Notes under the pieces: generated by a model
What the model was told of the DNA's origin: nothing
Seen by the model: only the letters and a program-made list of their open reading frames with translations
Databases searched by the model: none
NCBI GenBank assembly: GCA_002269645.1
Contig: NIVC01003410.1
Coordinates: 35,333-99,332, forward strand
Direction: 5' to 3'
Length of the DNA stretch: 64,000 nt
From: Macrostomum lignano
Taxonomy: Eukaryota
Part shown: positions 19,966 through 57,234 of the stretch, one piece after another
Position numbering within the stretch: position 1 is the first letter of the stretch
Layout: every line of letters starts with the position of its first letter
Program-made: the position numbers and the translations under genes

Positions 19966-21231
19966 TCAATATCGAACGCCGTGGATTTTGTCCGCCAGCT
20001 TGAACAGTCCCTTGTTTGCCTCTTTCTTGAAGATTTTGTACGGAGCCTTCAGTACGGCGATCGCGACTCCTGCATGCAAATTTTTGGCATTCACTTGAGT
20101 TTTGAAATTTTACCTTTTACGTCTAACAGATGGCACCAGTGTCTAACAGCTGTGGTGTGTCTAACACCTGTGGTGTGTCTAACAGCTGTGGTGTGTCTAA
20201 CATGCAGCTCTTATGTGTCTAACAGCTGTGGTGTGTCTAACAGCTGTGGTGTGTCTAACATGCAGCTGTGGTGTGTCTAACAGCTGTGGTGTGTCTAACA
20301 GCTGTGGTGTGTCTAACAGCTGTGGTGTGTCTAACAGCTGTGGTGTGTCTAACAGCTGTGGTGTGTCTAACAGCTGTGGTGTGTCTAACAGCTGTGGTGT
20401 GTCTAACACCTGTGGTGTGTCTAACAGCTGTGGTGTGTCTAACATGCAGCTGTGGTGTGTCTAACAGCTGTGGTGTGTCTAACACCTGTGGTGTGTCTAA
20501 CAGCTGTGGTGCGTCTAACATGCAGCTCTTATGTGTCTAACAGCTGTGGTGTGTCTAACAGCTGTGGTGTGTCTAACAGCTGTGGTGTGTCTAACATGCA
20601 GCTGTGGTGTGTCTAACAGCTGTGGTGTGTCTAACAGCTGTGGTGTGTCTAACAGCTGTGGTGTGTCTAACAGCTGTGGTGTGTCTAACAGCTGTGGTGT
20701 GTCTAACATGCAGCTGTGGTGTGTCTAACAGCTGTGGTGTGTCTAACAGCTGTAATGTGTCTAACAGCTGTGGTGTGTCTAACAGCTGTGGTGTGTCTAA
20801 CAGCTGTAATGTGTCTAACAGCTGTGGTGTGTCTAACAGCTGTGGTGTGTCTAACAGCTGTGGTGTGTCTAACAGCTGTGGTGTGTCTAACAGCTGTGGT
20901 GTGTCTAACGGCTGTAATGTGTCTAACAGCTGTGGTGTGTCTAACAGCTTTGGTGTGTCTAACAGCTGTAATGTGTCTAACATGCAGCTGTGGTGTGTCC
21001 AACAGCTGTGTGTCTAACAGATCAGATGTCTCTAACAGCTGACATCAGAGTCTAACACTTGAGATAGCTATCTAACAGCTAGCACTGGAGTCTACTTGCG
21101 TGCAAATCTGTGCAAATAAAATTTTGGCGACATCCAAAAAACTTACTCTTTGGGCATCCGTCAGCCACTGAGGTGCTCATGATGACGAGACTAAGTGCTG
21201 CTATGATGAATAGAAACCGCCACATGCGCAT
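19966..21231 (-). CDS. Secreted cationic peptide A (62 aa; exons 21231-21147, 20069-19966)
   Basis: MRMWRFLFIIAALSLVIMSTSVADG-CPK|RVAIAVLKAPYKIFKKEANKGLFKLADKIHGVRY*. GTAAGT donor, CAG acceptor, phase 1; homologous to B, C and D. Confidence 0.85.
20125..21060. repeat. 19-bp minisatellite (AACAGCTGTGGTGTGTCTA) filling the intron of peptide A
   Basis: Tandem units. Confidence 0.95.
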
Positions 21232-21469
21232 GTCGATAGCGGGTTGAGCTGCTAAACTGCTCAATAGACAGCAGGATGACTTACTTGTTATTAAAATGGC
21301 TTGCGATGGCTATAAAATAGATGCATCAATTGCGCATCATATTTTGTAAGAACGCATTCCCAAGTTCTCAGTAATTCGTTCCTTAAAAGAATAAGTAATC
21401 TAACATATGATTGCTGTATCTCTATGGTCCAACCAGTTAACTTACACTACTCGGTTTTAAAATAACTAA

Positions 21470-21640
21470 CTAACTAACTAACTAACTAACTAACTAACTA
21501 ACTAACTAACTAACTAACTAACTAACTAACTAACTAACTAACTAACTAACTAACTAACTAACTAACTAACTAACTAACTAACTAACTAACTAACTAACTA
21601 ACTAACTAACTAACTAAATAACTAACTAACAAACTAACAA
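21470..21640. repeat. (TAAC)n microsatellite
   Basis: Seen directly. Confidence 0.97.
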
Positions 21641-22105
21641 ATGTTAAATGCGGTTTAATCAGATGATTAGGAACGTTTCAGAAAATTTACTGTAAATGTC
21701 TAACTTTAAATAAATCTCGTTTAAAGTTAAGATGTAAATTCTTGTTTTTAGTTAAAAAATACTTTAAAAAATAGTTACACGTAACTTAAATATTTCCTTT
21801 CTTTTATATTTTTGTTTATTTAATGTTGTTAAAAACGAAATTCCCAAATTGCATTTTAAACAAAATAAAACTTGTAACCACTGTCGACATAGCGTCGTGT
21901 TGTCGTGTTTTAATGAAAAAAACAAAAAAATTTACTTCTACCAGTCATGCAAAAGGTTTCGCATTACCTAACACAGATTATTAATGGTTCACTCGAGTTT
22001 CTTACTACTCCAAGACAAAAATATAAATCTAAAAGTGCTACTTAAAGTAAGCAATAAGAGCACGTAGTCAGAAAATATTTGAATTTAACAAATAAGTGTT
22101 GCAAT

Positions 22106-54624: not shown

Positions 54625-55480
54625 GCACCATGGTGCTGGCGCCCCTGGTTCTGGCGCCCCTGGGTCTGGCGCCTCTGGCGGTGCTGGCGCCCCTGGTGCT
54701 GGCGCCCCTGGTGCTGGCGCCCCTGGTGTTGGCGCCCCTGGTGCTGGCGCCCCTGGTGCTGGCGCCCCTGGTGCTGGCGCCCCTTTTGCTGGCGCCCCTG
54801 GTGCTGGCGCCCCTGGTGCTGGCGCCCCTGGTGCTGGCGCCCCTGGTGCTGGCGCCCCTGGTGCTGGCGCCCCTGGTGCTGGCGCTCCTGGTGCTGGCGC
54901 CCTGGTGCTGGCGCCCCTGGTGCTGGCGCCCCTGGTGCTGGCGCCCCTGGTGCTGGCGCCCCTGGTGCTGGCGCCCCTGGTGCTGGCGCCCCTGGTGCTA
55001 AAGCCCCTGGTGCTAAAGCCCCTGGTGCTGGCGCCCCTGGTGCTAAAGCCCCTGGTGCTAAAGCCCCTGGTGCTAAAGCCCCTGGTGCTAAAGCCCCTGG
55101 TGCTAAAGCCCCTGGTGCTAAAGCCCCTGGTGCTAAAGCCCCTGGTGCTAAAGCCCCTGGTGCTAAAGCCCCTGGTGCTAAAGTTCCTGGTGCTAAAGCC
55201 CCTGGTGCTAAAGCCCCTGGTGCTAAAGCCCCTGGTGCTAAAGCCCCTGGTGCTAAAGCCCCTGGTGCTAAAGCCCCTGGTGCTAAAGCCCCTGGTGCTA
55301 AAGCCCCTGGTGCTAAAGCCCCTGGTGCTAAAGCCCCTTGGTGCTAAAGCCCCTGGTGCTAAAGCCCCTGGTGCTAAAGCCCCTGGTGCTAAAGCCCCTG
55401 GTGCTAAAGCCCCTGGTGCTAAAGCCCCTGGTGCTAAAGCCCCTGGTGCTAAAGCCCATGTTGCTAAAGCCCCTGGTGCT
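54625..55480. repeat. 15-bp tandem repeat (CCCCTGGTGCTGGCG / CCCCTGGTGCTAAAG)
   Basis: Tandem units with a polarized switch from the AAAG to the GGCG variant; possibly coding (see findings). Confidence 0.95.
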
Positions 55481-56023
55481 GCATGGCGAACTGCTAAAGC
55501 TCCTGTCACAGGAACCAAAACTAATTTTCTTTATAAATGCTGAAATATAGTACAGTAGCCTGTACATACATGTAGAAACAGACCGTGCAACCCTCAAACA
55601 TTAGCTACTTGGTCTAAAACATGAATTTAGAAACATGAACTGTTTTGCTAATTAAGTAAATAATACACTGGCAAGTCATACTGTACGGACAATTAAAAAC
55701 TACACGCACTGCACATACTATTACACTTACAAATGTGTATATATTCTACTGCTAGAGTAGCATGTACATCTCAATGACTTTAATCTAGTATATTTTTTAT
55801 CAGCCGTAGTACAAAATGAAAGTCTATACGTATAGACGTATAGACCAGGTGGCATTTACATCTTCCTTATCTTTGTAATAAAAAATATATAAAAGCATTT
55901 TACTGACAACTCTACTGAGGCTAAATTCAAAGCAAATTGAACAAACCTGTACATAAAAAATATCGAGTTAGAAAATGTTGATCTCAGAGTGTTTAAATGA
56001 TGCCGAAATGATAGCAAGCTGAT

Positions 56024-57234
56024 TTAATGATAGCCCATTAGTCTGCCATCCACTGGCGAGTACATTGGGTTGTGTCCCTTCGCCACTTTCTTGTAGCCGC
56101 CCAGGAAGTTTAGCGTATCTGCGAGTGTTCAGGGAGTCAAGGGATGGGTCAAGTGAGTCAGGGATATCTAGTCAAGTGAGTCAGGGATATTTAGTCAAGT
56201 GAGTCAGGGATATTTAGTCAAGTGAGTCAGGGATATTTAGTCAAGTGAGTCAGGGATATTAGTCAAGTGTGTCAGGGATATTTAGTCAAGTGAGTCAGCT
56301 AGGATGTTAGTCAAGTGAGTCAGGGATATTAGTCAAGTGAGTCAGCTAGGATGTTAGTCAAGTGAGTCAGGGATATTAGTCAAGTGAGTCAGGGATATTT
56401 ATTCAAGTGAGTCAGGGATATTTAGTCAAGTGTGTCAGGGATATTAGTCAAGTGAGTCAGGGATATTAGTCAAGTGAGTCAGCAATATTTAGTCCAGTGA
56501 GTCAGGGATATTAGTCAAGTGAGTCAGGAGATAATATTCAAGTGAGTCAGGGATATTAGTCAAGTGAGTCAGGGATATTAGTCAAGTGAGTCAGCAATAT
56601 TTAGTCAAGTGAGTCAGCAATATTTAGTCAAGTGAGTCAGGGATATTAGTCAAGTGTGTCAGAGATATTTAGTTAAGTGAGTCAGGGGATAATATTCAAG
56701 TGAGTCAGGGATATTAGTCAAGTGAGTCAGCAATATTTAGTCCAGTGAGTCAGGGATATTAGTCAAGTGAGTCAGGAGATAATATTCAAGTGAGTCAGGG
56801 ATATTAGTCAAGTGTGTCAGAGATATTTAGTTAAGTGAGTCAGGGGATAATATTCAAGTGAGTCAGGGATATTAGTCAAGTGAGTCAGCAATATTTAGTC
56901 CAGTGAGTCAGGGATATTAGTCAAGTGAGTCAGGAGATAATATTCAAGTGAGTCAGGGATATTAGTCAAGTGTGTCAGAGATATTTAGTTAAGTGAGTCA
57001 GGGGATAATATTCAAGTGAGTCAGGGATATTATTCAAGTAAGTCGGGATGTTAGTCGAGTGGGTCAGGAATCTTCAGAAAGAATTTTCAGAAAGAAAGTA
57101 GAAAAGCAGAAGAACAGGTTGCTGCTGGTGCGGAACTTACCTCTGGCGCAGCAGTAAGTGGTGTGGAGCCCAATCAGGAGAATTAGCAGGCACAGGACTA
57201 GCTTGGCACTTCCGCCACTGCGTTGCCAAAGCAT
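56024..57234 (-). CDS. Putative secreted peptide E (62 aa; exons 57234-57141, 56118-56024), divergent member of the A-D family
   Basis: MLWQRSGGSAKLVLCLLILLIGLHTTYC-CAR|DTLNFLGGYKKVAKGHNPMYSPVDGRLMGYH*. GTAAGT donor, CTCGCAG acceptor, phase 1; same architecture, weak sequence similarity. Confidence 0.6.
56145..57060. repeat. 22/23-bp minisatellite (AGTCAAGTGAGTCAGGGATATT) in the intron of peptide E
   Basis: Tandem units with higher-order blocks. Confidence 0.95.

Follow-up and report, generated by a model that had tools for sequence, protein, structure and literature searches.

The window analysed here, a stretch of 64 kb that forms the final 64 kb of contig NIVC01003410.1 of Macrostomum lignano, carries five genes (A to E) on the minus strand, each of which consists of two exons. 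Genes A to D form a tandem cluster on the same strand, and gene E, which has the same layout, lies separately, 25 kb off. The span between positions 19966 and 57234 reaches from the final base of the gene A stop codon to the ATG of gene E. A sequence-only reading of this region had described five motifs fitting the (-3,-1) rule ahead of a Cys, and all five were located: ADGC at 21165, GHGC at 23804, GDCC at 27718, AECC at 31595 and TYCC at 57159. Each motif closes an ATG-initiated hydrophobic exon encoding a signal peptide, the Cys and two to three further residues. This exon ends at a phase-1 donor, GTAAGT or GTAAGC, two to three codons past the Cys, and splicing to a downstream YAG acceptor leads to proteins of 62, 141, 83, 132, and 62 aa for genes A, B, C, D, and E, respectively.

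In gene A (Mlig011746), exon 1 (21147..21231) encodes the signal peptide MRMWRFLFIIAALSLVIMSTSVADG and Cys-Pro-Lys and ends one base into a split codon, with the Cys codon TGC at 21154-21156, and exon 2 (19966..20069, including the stop codon) gives the mature peptide CPKRVAIAVLKAPYKIFKKEANKGLFKLADKIHGVRY of 37 aa with a net charge of +8. Exon 1 of gene B (Mlig007395; 23786..23876) encodes a signal peptide ending in LVDLGHG and then Cys-Pro-Ile; the Cys codon at 23793-23795 is TGT, as opposed to TGC in the other four genes, and exon 2 (22106..22440) gives a mature chain of 114 aa with a net charge of +18 and the C-terminus KQAMGR. The unannotated gene C comprises exon 1 (27697..27787), with a signal peptide ending in FIQTGDC followed by Cys-Thr-Pro-Ala and the second Cys codon TGC at 27707-27709, and exon 2 (26687..26847), with a mature chain of 57 aa and a net charge of +15. 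In gene D (Mlig027090), the signal peptide encoded by exon 1 (31577..31670) ends in WILRCAEC and is followed by Cys-Pro-Ile, the second Cys codon TGC being located at 31584-31586; exon 2 (30058..30362) gives a mature chain of 104 aa with a net charge of +12, an Ala/Lys/Glu-rich composition predicted to form a long helix, and the end NNRWG. Finally, exon 1 of gene E (Mlig014890/Mlig005836; 57141..57234) encodes a signal peptide ending in IGLHTTYC and then Cys-Ala-Arg, with the second Cys codon TGC at 57148-57150, and exon 2 (56024..56118) gives the mature peptide CARDTLNFLGGYKKVAKGHNPMYSPVDGRLMGYH of 34 aa with a net charge of +3.

The hand-spliced products of genes A, B, D, and E are 100% identical to deposited M. 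lignano GenBank proteins, and the annotation of this genome was built on RNA-seq and transcriptome assembly (PMC5730564). Canonical donors and acceptors are present in every copy of the genes. Genes A, B, D, and E are thus shown to be real, transcribed genes that are spliced as modelled. Between homeologous contigs, gene A differs by four synonymous and no nonsynonymous substitutions, and the same numbers were found for gene E, with the introns of both genes being 3-9% diverged. On this comparison, genes A and E are shown to be under purifying selection. Chance open reading frames in a repeat-rich genome could in principle mimic such a locus, considering that the proteins are very short and without homologs, that the introns are made of minisatellites and that gene C lacks an annotation. 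This reading is extremely improbable given the transcript-based models, the canonical splice sites in every copy, the exclusively synonymous changes in genes A and E and the significant paralogy of genes A to D described below, and for genes A, B, D, and E it is already refuted.

Although gene C is not annotated, three homeologous contigs carry it with an undisrupted reading frame and undisrupted splice sites. Its pN/pS ratio among these contigs is about 0.5, and no AATAAA or ATTAAA was found in the 400 nt downstream of its stop codon. Gene C may be a decaying copy, as suggested by the missing annotation, the lack of a poly(A) signal within 400 nt and the pN/pS value.

The introns are composed of minisatellites, and the intron of gene C appears SINE-like by eye; a search with ARAGORN revealed no tRNA-like element in the 64-kb window. 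A shared-k-mer search in the 400 nt upstream of each gene returned no motif common to all five genes, but only pairwise 10-mers. The CCAAT-like 10-mer AGCCAATCTG is located at 31810..31819 on the minus strand, 149 nt upstream of the gene D ATG, and a second copy is found at 27901-27910, 123 nt upstream of the gene C ATG. The 10-mer AGCCATTTTA is located at 23987..23996 on the minus strand, 120 nt upstream of the gene B ATG, with a second copy at 21292-21301, 70 nt upstream of the gene A ATG. Neither 10-mer has further copies in the window.

The mature regions of genes A to D recognize each other in leave-one-out HMM comparisons with 12-48 bits, and none of 1000 shuffles matched the real score. 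Pairwise identity among the four is 26-36%, and just six columns are invariant, the Cys being one of them (M1, C, P, K, N, K). By these comparisons, A to D are true paralogs. Gene E, which had been counted earlier as a fifth paralog, is a look-alike that shares the architecture of A to D; homology of its mature part is undemonstrated at the sequence level. Since A to D inherit the Cys by common descent, its presence in these genes does not count as four independent observations.

Outside this family, no relatives were detected. An exhaustive HMM search of 1.84 billion representative proteins, with a query built without gene C, recovered A, B, and D themselves and none beyond, and a five-sequence profile, run in a word-indexed search against 5.8 billion proteins, gave matches from M. 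lignano alone. Gene E as lone query recovered itself and nothing else. A Pfam scan of all five proteins gave no match above noise and none at E<=10, and a profile search of PDB sequences gave just chance matches to DnaJ and ATG16 at E>0.1. These searches point to A to D and E being lineage-restricted, orphan two-exon peptide genes. An NTR/TIMP module, from which the automatic UniProt name of A is derived, spans about 120-180 aa and contains six conserved Cys; this assignment was rejected, as A has 62 aa, a single mature Cys and no Pfam match at E<=10. An identity as bacterial-type lipoproteins was also rejected: the residues preceding the Cys (VADG, LGHG, TGDC, CAEC, and TTYC) do not fit the lipobox [LVI][ASTVI][GAS]C in any of the genes, and spliceosomal introns and the flatworm host oppose it as well.

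The position of the Cys relative to the predicted signal-peptidase site was evaluated with a von Heijne weight matrix (n=161 counts), all columns of which sum to 161, as they should in a correct matrix. This method picks the correct cleavage site about three times in four. The cut directly before the conserved Cys ranks first in A (8.2), B (8.1), and D (10.7), and second in C (6.05 vs 6.42) and E (7.66 vs 8.78). A Cys at the +1 position is the top-ranked prediction for A, B, and D, but not for C and E, where the alternative cuts would leave two adjacent Cys in the chain, with Gly or Thr at +1. None of the top two sites per gene removes the conserved Cys. Cleavage behind the Cys is excluded in A, B, and D by the following Pro, which was found at +1 in 0 of the 161 counted sites. 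A lower-scoring site in gene E (CCA|RD, 5.0) would remove both Cys, which counts against a dimeric product of this gene. The chance level quoted for E is about 5%, as Cys occurs at +1 in 8 of the 161 sites. After the proposed cut, every one of the five mature chains contains exactly one Cys, in agreement with the earlier description. Retention of the conserved Cys in the mature chain is predicted, with the Cys placed at +1 or close to it. A six-frame scan of the window for a Met-started hydrophobic exon ending in Cys plus zero to four residues and a GTRAG donor returned B, C, D, and E and nothing else; gene A was missed due to a Ser in its hydrophobic core.

A different role of the Cys would result if the N-terminus were an uncleaved membrane anchor, in which case the adjacent Cys or Cys-Cys could be a juxtamembrane S-acylation site. 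A Cys-Cys pair beside a hydrophobic segment indeed resembles DHHC palmitoylation sites. The hydrophobic regions of A to E are only 11-13 residues long, however, a length that corresponds to signal peptides and is too short to span the bilayer, and the polar c-region behind each core offers good (-3,-1) sites. This highly improbable reading was rejected on the length of the hydrophobic region.

The net charge of the mature chains ranges from +3 to +18. The AF2 model of gene D is all-helical and consists essentially of one long helix (mean pLDDT 71, pTM 0.36), which is broken exactly at AECCP. The maximum hydrophobic moment of the chains is barely above that of shuffled controls, with a fraction of 0.03-0.57 of the shuffles reaching the observed value. 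The products of A to E are predicted to consist of a signal peptide and a short, strongly cationic, largely α-helical secreted chain.

For the fate of the Cys, the best explanation overall, which is put forward tentatively, is that these genes encode orphan secreted cationic helices whose N-terminal Cys thiol is used for an intermolecular disulfide. According to this proposal, signal peptidase would cut just ahead of the conserved Cys or as many as three residues upstream, so that a Pro-capped helix would carry the thiol at its N-terminus. Within the secretory pathway, which is oxidising, this thiol would then form an intermolecular disulfide, and the products would be covalent parallel homodimers. 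As the position of the Cys is kept across the paralogs, heterodimers would be possible, too. Such dimers would likely act as membrane- or polyanion-binding effectors, either in host defence or as a secretory-gland or seminal-fluid product.

A somewhat unlikely alternative is that the final product lacks the Cys, or that the Cys has no particular chemical role. In a first version, the stub C-P-K-R, C-P-I-K, C-T-P-A-K or C-A-R would be trimmed at a nearby basic residue, leading to Cys-free cationic peptides. A convertase could remove the stub in this way because Lys-Arg follows Cys-Pro in gene A and a basic residue is found 3-7 residues past the Cys in all five genes; in addition, the C-termini of B (Gly-Arg) and D (Gly) are of a kind typical for prohormone-type processing and amidation. 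Monobasic sites predict cleavage poorly, however, and the nearest basic residue in B is seven residues away. In a second version, the thiol would be free or capped and would be kept merely as context of the signal-peptidase site and the exon junction. In eukaryotic signal-peptidase sites generally, Cys occurs more often than expected at -3, -1, and +1, which is in line with this version. Yet, the c-region otherwise varies freely among the paralogs while Cys(-Pro) is invariant, which suggests that the Cys itself is constrained.

Besides forming a disulfide, an exposed N-terminal Cys could be N-palmitoylated by a putative flatworm orthologue of HHAT/Rasp, resulting in membrane-tethered lipopeptides. 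This is improbable, and it is even more doubtful that A to D, and perhaps E, as HHAT substrates constitute a lineage-specific family of ribosomally synthesised, N-palmitoylated secreted peptides. The cleavage predictions are compatible with lipidation, as the cut exposing the Cys at +1 ranks first in A, B, and D and falls just behind the best site in C and E; if these two were cut at the alternative site, however, Gly or Thr would be exposed instead. As rules of thumb for HHAT, residue 2 is G, S, A, P or Q but not K, and a basic residue is present among the first seven residues (PMC8061759). In A to E, residue 2 is P, P, T, P, and A, respectively, and thus never Lys, in agreement with the first rule; Pro and Ala belong to the tolerated residues, and the Thr of gene C may do so. 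A basic residue among the first seven is present in 5/5 sequences (CPKRVAI, CPISLTK, CTPAKAI, CPIKIAK, and CARDTLN), but with about 25% Lys+Arg this occurs by chance in about 80% of cases and is only weakly discriminating. Rasp is known to act on a non-Hedgehog substrate, Spitz. An N-terminal Cys by itself is, however, insufficient for modification, and among 87 human secretory proteins predicted to have an N-terminal Cys, the Hedgehogs are the only demonstrated HHAT substrates (PMC8061759). A literature search found no paper connecting Macrostomum with HHAT.

The sequence prerequisites for both a lipid and a disulfide at the Cys are present, and sequence cannot tell between the two. Nevertheless, the intermolecular disulfide is favoured over lipidation with modest confidence, since dimerisation via a disulfide is the less unusual fate, with direct examples among known peptides (PMC2931633).

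A to D and E are previously uncharacterised orphan peptide genes. No match to Mlig027090, 007395, 010865, 011746 or 014890 was found in full text and in the accessible supplement text of M. lignano papers on genome annotation, on positional and reproductive RNA-seq, on signatures of neoblasts and the germline, and on ploidy and ageing, and part of these supplements gave no match to 005836 either. Literature searches found no proteomic or expression data for A to E, no single-cell atlas of M. lignano and no antimicrobial peptide from Macrostomum. Small taxon-restricted secreted peptides are the least understood portion of flatworm genomes. If the Cys drives covalent heterodimers, four genes could give rise to up to ten distinct dimers, a way of gaining diversity that the mouse CRS peptides also use. 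If the Cys is acylated, HHAT would take a far broader set of substrates than is now accepted; the products would be the first animal lipopeptides of this sort other than the signalling ligands Hedgehog and Spitz, and would indicate for the first time that HHAT has been recruited for effector molecules. If neither is the case, the cluster would add another orphan peptide family whose signal-peptidase site is ordinary. Transgenesis is established in M. lignano (PMC5730564) and its body is transparent, so that the cluster is tractable and tagged or Cys-to-Ser constructs are directly testable.

Several known systems resemble the products of A to E in part. With the HHAT/Rasp substrates Hedgehog and Drosophila Spitz, Keren, and Gurken, they may share a signal cleavage that exposes an N-terminal Cys; A to E differ in that they have neither a Hedgehog nor an EGF domain and no homology to these proteins. 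The helminth defence molecules FhHDM-1 and Sm16 are flatworm proteins of small size whose signal peptide is encoded in exon 1 and whose body is mostly α-helical and amphipathic (PMC7373315; PMC3093369); a signal peptide in exon 1 and a largely helical body are also predicted for A to E. Helminth defence molecules are, however, trematode-specific and encoded by four exons (PMC7373315), whereas A to E consist of two exons, share a single conserved Cys and show no detectable similarity to them. An identity as trematode helminth defence molecules was rejected on the exon number and on the exhaustive profile search, which recovered the family itself only. Human apolipoprotein A-II, a secreted chain of amphipathic helix, homodimerises through a single Cys near the N-terminus; it is a lipid-binding plasma protein, is not cationic and is unrelated in sequence to A to E. 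Disulfide-linked dimers are also known among cationic antimicrobial peptides, namely dicynthaurin, halocidin, distinctin, CAP11, and the mouse CRS peptides (PMC2931633). In the first three, the chains are joined by a single interchain disulfide, and the CRS peptides form combinatorial covalent homo- and heterodimers among paralogs (PMC2931633). Like these peptides, A to E are predicted to be short, secreted, and cationic, but the sequences are unrelated, B and D are much longer (104-114 aa), and the Cys of A to E is predicted at the extreme N-terminus, right behind the signal peptide.

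All five tetrapeptides that the sequence-only reading had reported are present on the minus strand (ADGC at 21165, GHGC at 23804, GDCC at 27718, AECC at 31595, and TYCC at 57159), and direct extraction from the window yields two exons and a GT...AG intron for each of the five genes A-E. Each tetrapeptide lies near the end of a hydrophobic, ATG-started frame, in which coding ends two to three codons past the Cys. At that point there is a strong phase-1 donor, which reads GTAAGT in A, D, and E and GTAAGC in the two others. A ...GCAG acceptor follows about 0.85-1.35 kb downstream of the donor, and from there a Lys-rich frame continues to the stop codon. 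Exons 1 and 2 are located on the minus strand at 21231-21147 and 20069-19966 in gene A (62 aa), at 23876-23786 and 22440-22106 in gene B (141 aa), at 27787-27697 and 26847-26687 in gene C (83 aa), at 31670-31577 and 30362-30058 in gene D (132 aa), and at 57234-57141 and 56118-56024 in gene E (62 aa). The interval originally assigned to the set corresponds exactly to the distance from the stop codon of A to the ATG of E. The window itself makes up the final 64 kb of contig NIVC01003410.1. The neighboring genes are ordinary: A is followed downstream by an M16 (insulin-degrading-enzyme-like) peptidase, an AIP-like PPIase/TPR gene stands between D and E, and an ASC-family channel is found upstream of E.

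The single intron of each gene is nearly filled by a minisatellite of its own (20139-21041, 22524-23711, 26963-27327, 30752-31478, and 56148-57068 for A-E). The repeat units of 18, 20, 23, 21, and about 22/45 bp are mutually unrelated and are present in 16-59 copies. Big tandem arrays are also found between the genes at 24519-26530 (16 bp x126), 28287-29264 (19 bp x51), and 54631-55481 (15 bp x57), the last of which, read on the minus strand, yields a spurious open frame of 326 aa made of GALAP/GFSTR repeats.

In all five precursors, a hydrophobic core of 11-13 residues is preceded by one or two basic residues and followed by a polar stretch of 5-9 residues. This layout is the anatomy of a cleavable signal peptide and argues against a membrane anchor. 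Every position was scored with the eukaryotic weight matrix of von Heijne (1986); all fifteen columns of the matrix as used here total 161, the original sample size, which argues for correct numbers. A cut directly before the Cys is the best site in A (8.2), B (8.1), and D (10.7), and a close second in C (6.05 vs. 6.42 for ...IQT|GDCC) and E (7.66 vs. 8.78 for ...LHT|TYCC). The Cys is kept by both top-scoring sites in every gene. For A, B, and D, a cut directly after it can be excluded, as it would place Pro at +1 (0/161 in the counts), and CCA|RD in E (score 5.0) is the sole candidate cut that would lose it. Accordingly, the suggested placement of the Cys at +1 is a firm prediction for three genes and a near-tie for C and E, whereas the claim of exactly one Cys per chain after the proposed cut holds for all five.

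The proposal of a five-paralog family is borne out for A-D, but for E it extends to architecture only. The alignment of A-D runs from the Cys through a common ...F-K-x-G-Q-K-x-V-N-K-x-L-Y-x-L-A-D-K-I-H core, and in a leave-one-out comparison of the mature regions alone an HMM built from three members gives the fourth 12-48 bits, a level reached by 0 of 1000 shuffles. The mature region of E scores -0.2 bits, with 85 of 1000 shuffles as high, so that common descent with A-D is not demonstrated; in layout E matches the family, since its signal peptide ends in Cys-Cys, its intron is in phase 1, its length is 62 aa, and its strand is the same. Upstream of the coding regions, the 10-mer AGCCAATCTG occurs only twice in the 64 kb, at 31810-31819 (149 nt before the ATG of D) and 27901-27910 (123 nt before that of C), and AGCCATTTTA likewise at 23987-23996 (120 nt before the ATG of B) and 21292-21301 (70 nt before that of A). 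Neither is associated with E within the window. The pairing of C with D and of A with B is the same split as that between Cys-Cys (C, D) and Gly-Cys (A, B), and the 10-mers probably represent a duplicated CCAAT-like promoter element.

An exhaustive HMMER scan of 1.84 billion representative proteins returned nothing beyond A, B, and D themselves, E alone as query returned only E, and no Pfam or PDB matches were obtained for the family, which by these searches is an orphan. A five-protein profile searched against 5.8 billion proteins led to five entries only. Four of these agree at every residue with spliced A, B, D, and E; the fifth, P0003, comes from a homeologous contig and is a variant of B with 146 aa. 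Since the annotation of assembly GCA_002269645.1 was built from genome-guided RNA-seq and transcriptome assembly (PMC5730564), A, B, D, and E are transcribed and spliced as described. The deposited name of the members is 'hypothetical protein' only, and a full-text literature search by gene IDs found the family mentioned in no paper. For A (A0A1I8IU74), UniProt gives the automatic name 'NTR domain-containing protein'. An NTR/TIMP module is ruled out by the 62-aa precursor, the single Cys in the secreted chain, and the lack of a Pfam match, and the N-terminal Cys that follows the signal peptide is what probably triggered the label.

Two more contigs carry the whole cluster with its neighbors, and a fourth contig carries E (homeologous loci L001-L010 on NIVC01000110.1, NIVC01000691.1, and NIVC01004815.1), which fits the known redundancy of the neopolyploid M. 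lignano assembly (PMC5730564). Start codon, donor, acceptor, frame, and Cys are kept in every copy of A-E. Between copies, A and E each have four synonymous and no nonsynonymous differences, which indicates purifying selection on both; their introns differ by 3-9%. The intron of A also varies in length across the contigs (854, 1077, and 1195 nt). B shows a few replacements and a 5-residue insertion, and D, which is 99.8-100% identical in all copies including its intron, is uninformative on selection. Divergence among the copies is uneven, as the window copy of the C intron has only 85% identity to the two others, and this pattern suggests gene conversion or duplicated segments of different ages.

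Gene C (26687-27787) is an intact two-exon paralog whose open reading frame is kept in three homeologous contigs. It is missing from the GenBank annotation and from a collection of 15 billion proteins, and neither AATAAA nor ATTAAA is found within 400 nt of its stop codon. The window copy differs by 8-10 replacements from each of the two other copies, which differ by four from each other, and, with a pN/pS of about 0.5 between copies, any constraint on C is weak. C would be either a fast-evolving gene that escaped annotation or a copy in decay.

The predicted mature chains of A-E comprise 37, 114, 57, 104, and 34 residues with net charges of +8, +18, +15, +12, and +3, respectively. In the AlphaFold2 model of D (mean pLDDT 71), the signal-peptide helix ends in a break at A-E-C-C-P. 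A second helix starts at the residue after Pro and extends to D-K-I-H, and beyond another break at K-P comes a long helix, rich in Ala/Lys/Glu and modeled with confidence. With moderate values of 0.42-0.77, the helical hydrophobic moments lie only slightly above those of same-composition shuffles, so that 'cationic helical' is a safer description than 'amphipathic'. The C-termini of B (...KQAMGR, 22106-22120) and D (...NNRWG, 30058-30072) would be usual precursors of C-terminal amidation; A, C, and E have no Gly or Gly-basic C-terminus.

A lone thiol in the oxidizing secretory pathway often ends as an intermolecular disulfide, and this is tentatively proposed as the most likely mechanism for A-E. 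The location of the Cys at the same position in clustered paralogs, at the N-terminal end of a Pro-capped helix, would suit parallel homo- and heterodimers. There are well-documented natural cationic peptides that a single cystine holds together (dicynthaurin, halocidin, distinctin, and CAP11), and mouse CRS peptides form covalent homo- and heterodimers among paralogs (PMC2931633). A substantial rival, if a somewhat doubtful one, is that the Cys-bearing stub is trimmed at a nearby basic residue or that the thiol has no special role; KR is found close to the Cys in A, and K or R within 3-7 residues in B-E. Palmitoylation of the exposed N-terminal Cys by HHAT is improbable. As published (PMC8061759), HHAT depends on a Cys at the N-terminus whose amine is free, on a tolerated second residue (G, S, A, P, or Q but not K), and on a basic residue within the first seven. 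All five predicted N-termini (CPKRVAI, CPISLTK, CTPAKAI, CPIKIAK, and CARDTLN) fit these rules, but in chains with about 25% Lys+Arg chance alone would nearly always supply the basic residue. According to the same review, an N-terminal Cys by itself is insufficient, and among the 87 human secretory proteins for which such a Cys is predicted, the Hedgehogs are the only ones shown to be substrates (PMC8061759). The evidence gives the lipopeptide reading no support and does not refute it either.

Members A-E do not fully match the defining features of HHAT substrates, NTR/TIMP proteins, bacterial lipoproteins, or helminth defence molecules. The family is best placed, as a new lineage-restricted member, in the broad class of small secreted cationic peptides, and its conserved lone Cys at the N-terminus offers a starting point for tests but is no demonstrated novelty. 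By the mechanism proposed here from sequence, antimicrobial peptides dimerised through disulfides would be the closest known systems. Among flatworm proteins, the helminth defence molecules of trematodes come closest; they are likewise small and secreted with a signal peptide in exon 1, but differ from A-E in having four exons, in being trematode-specific, and in their unrelated sequence.
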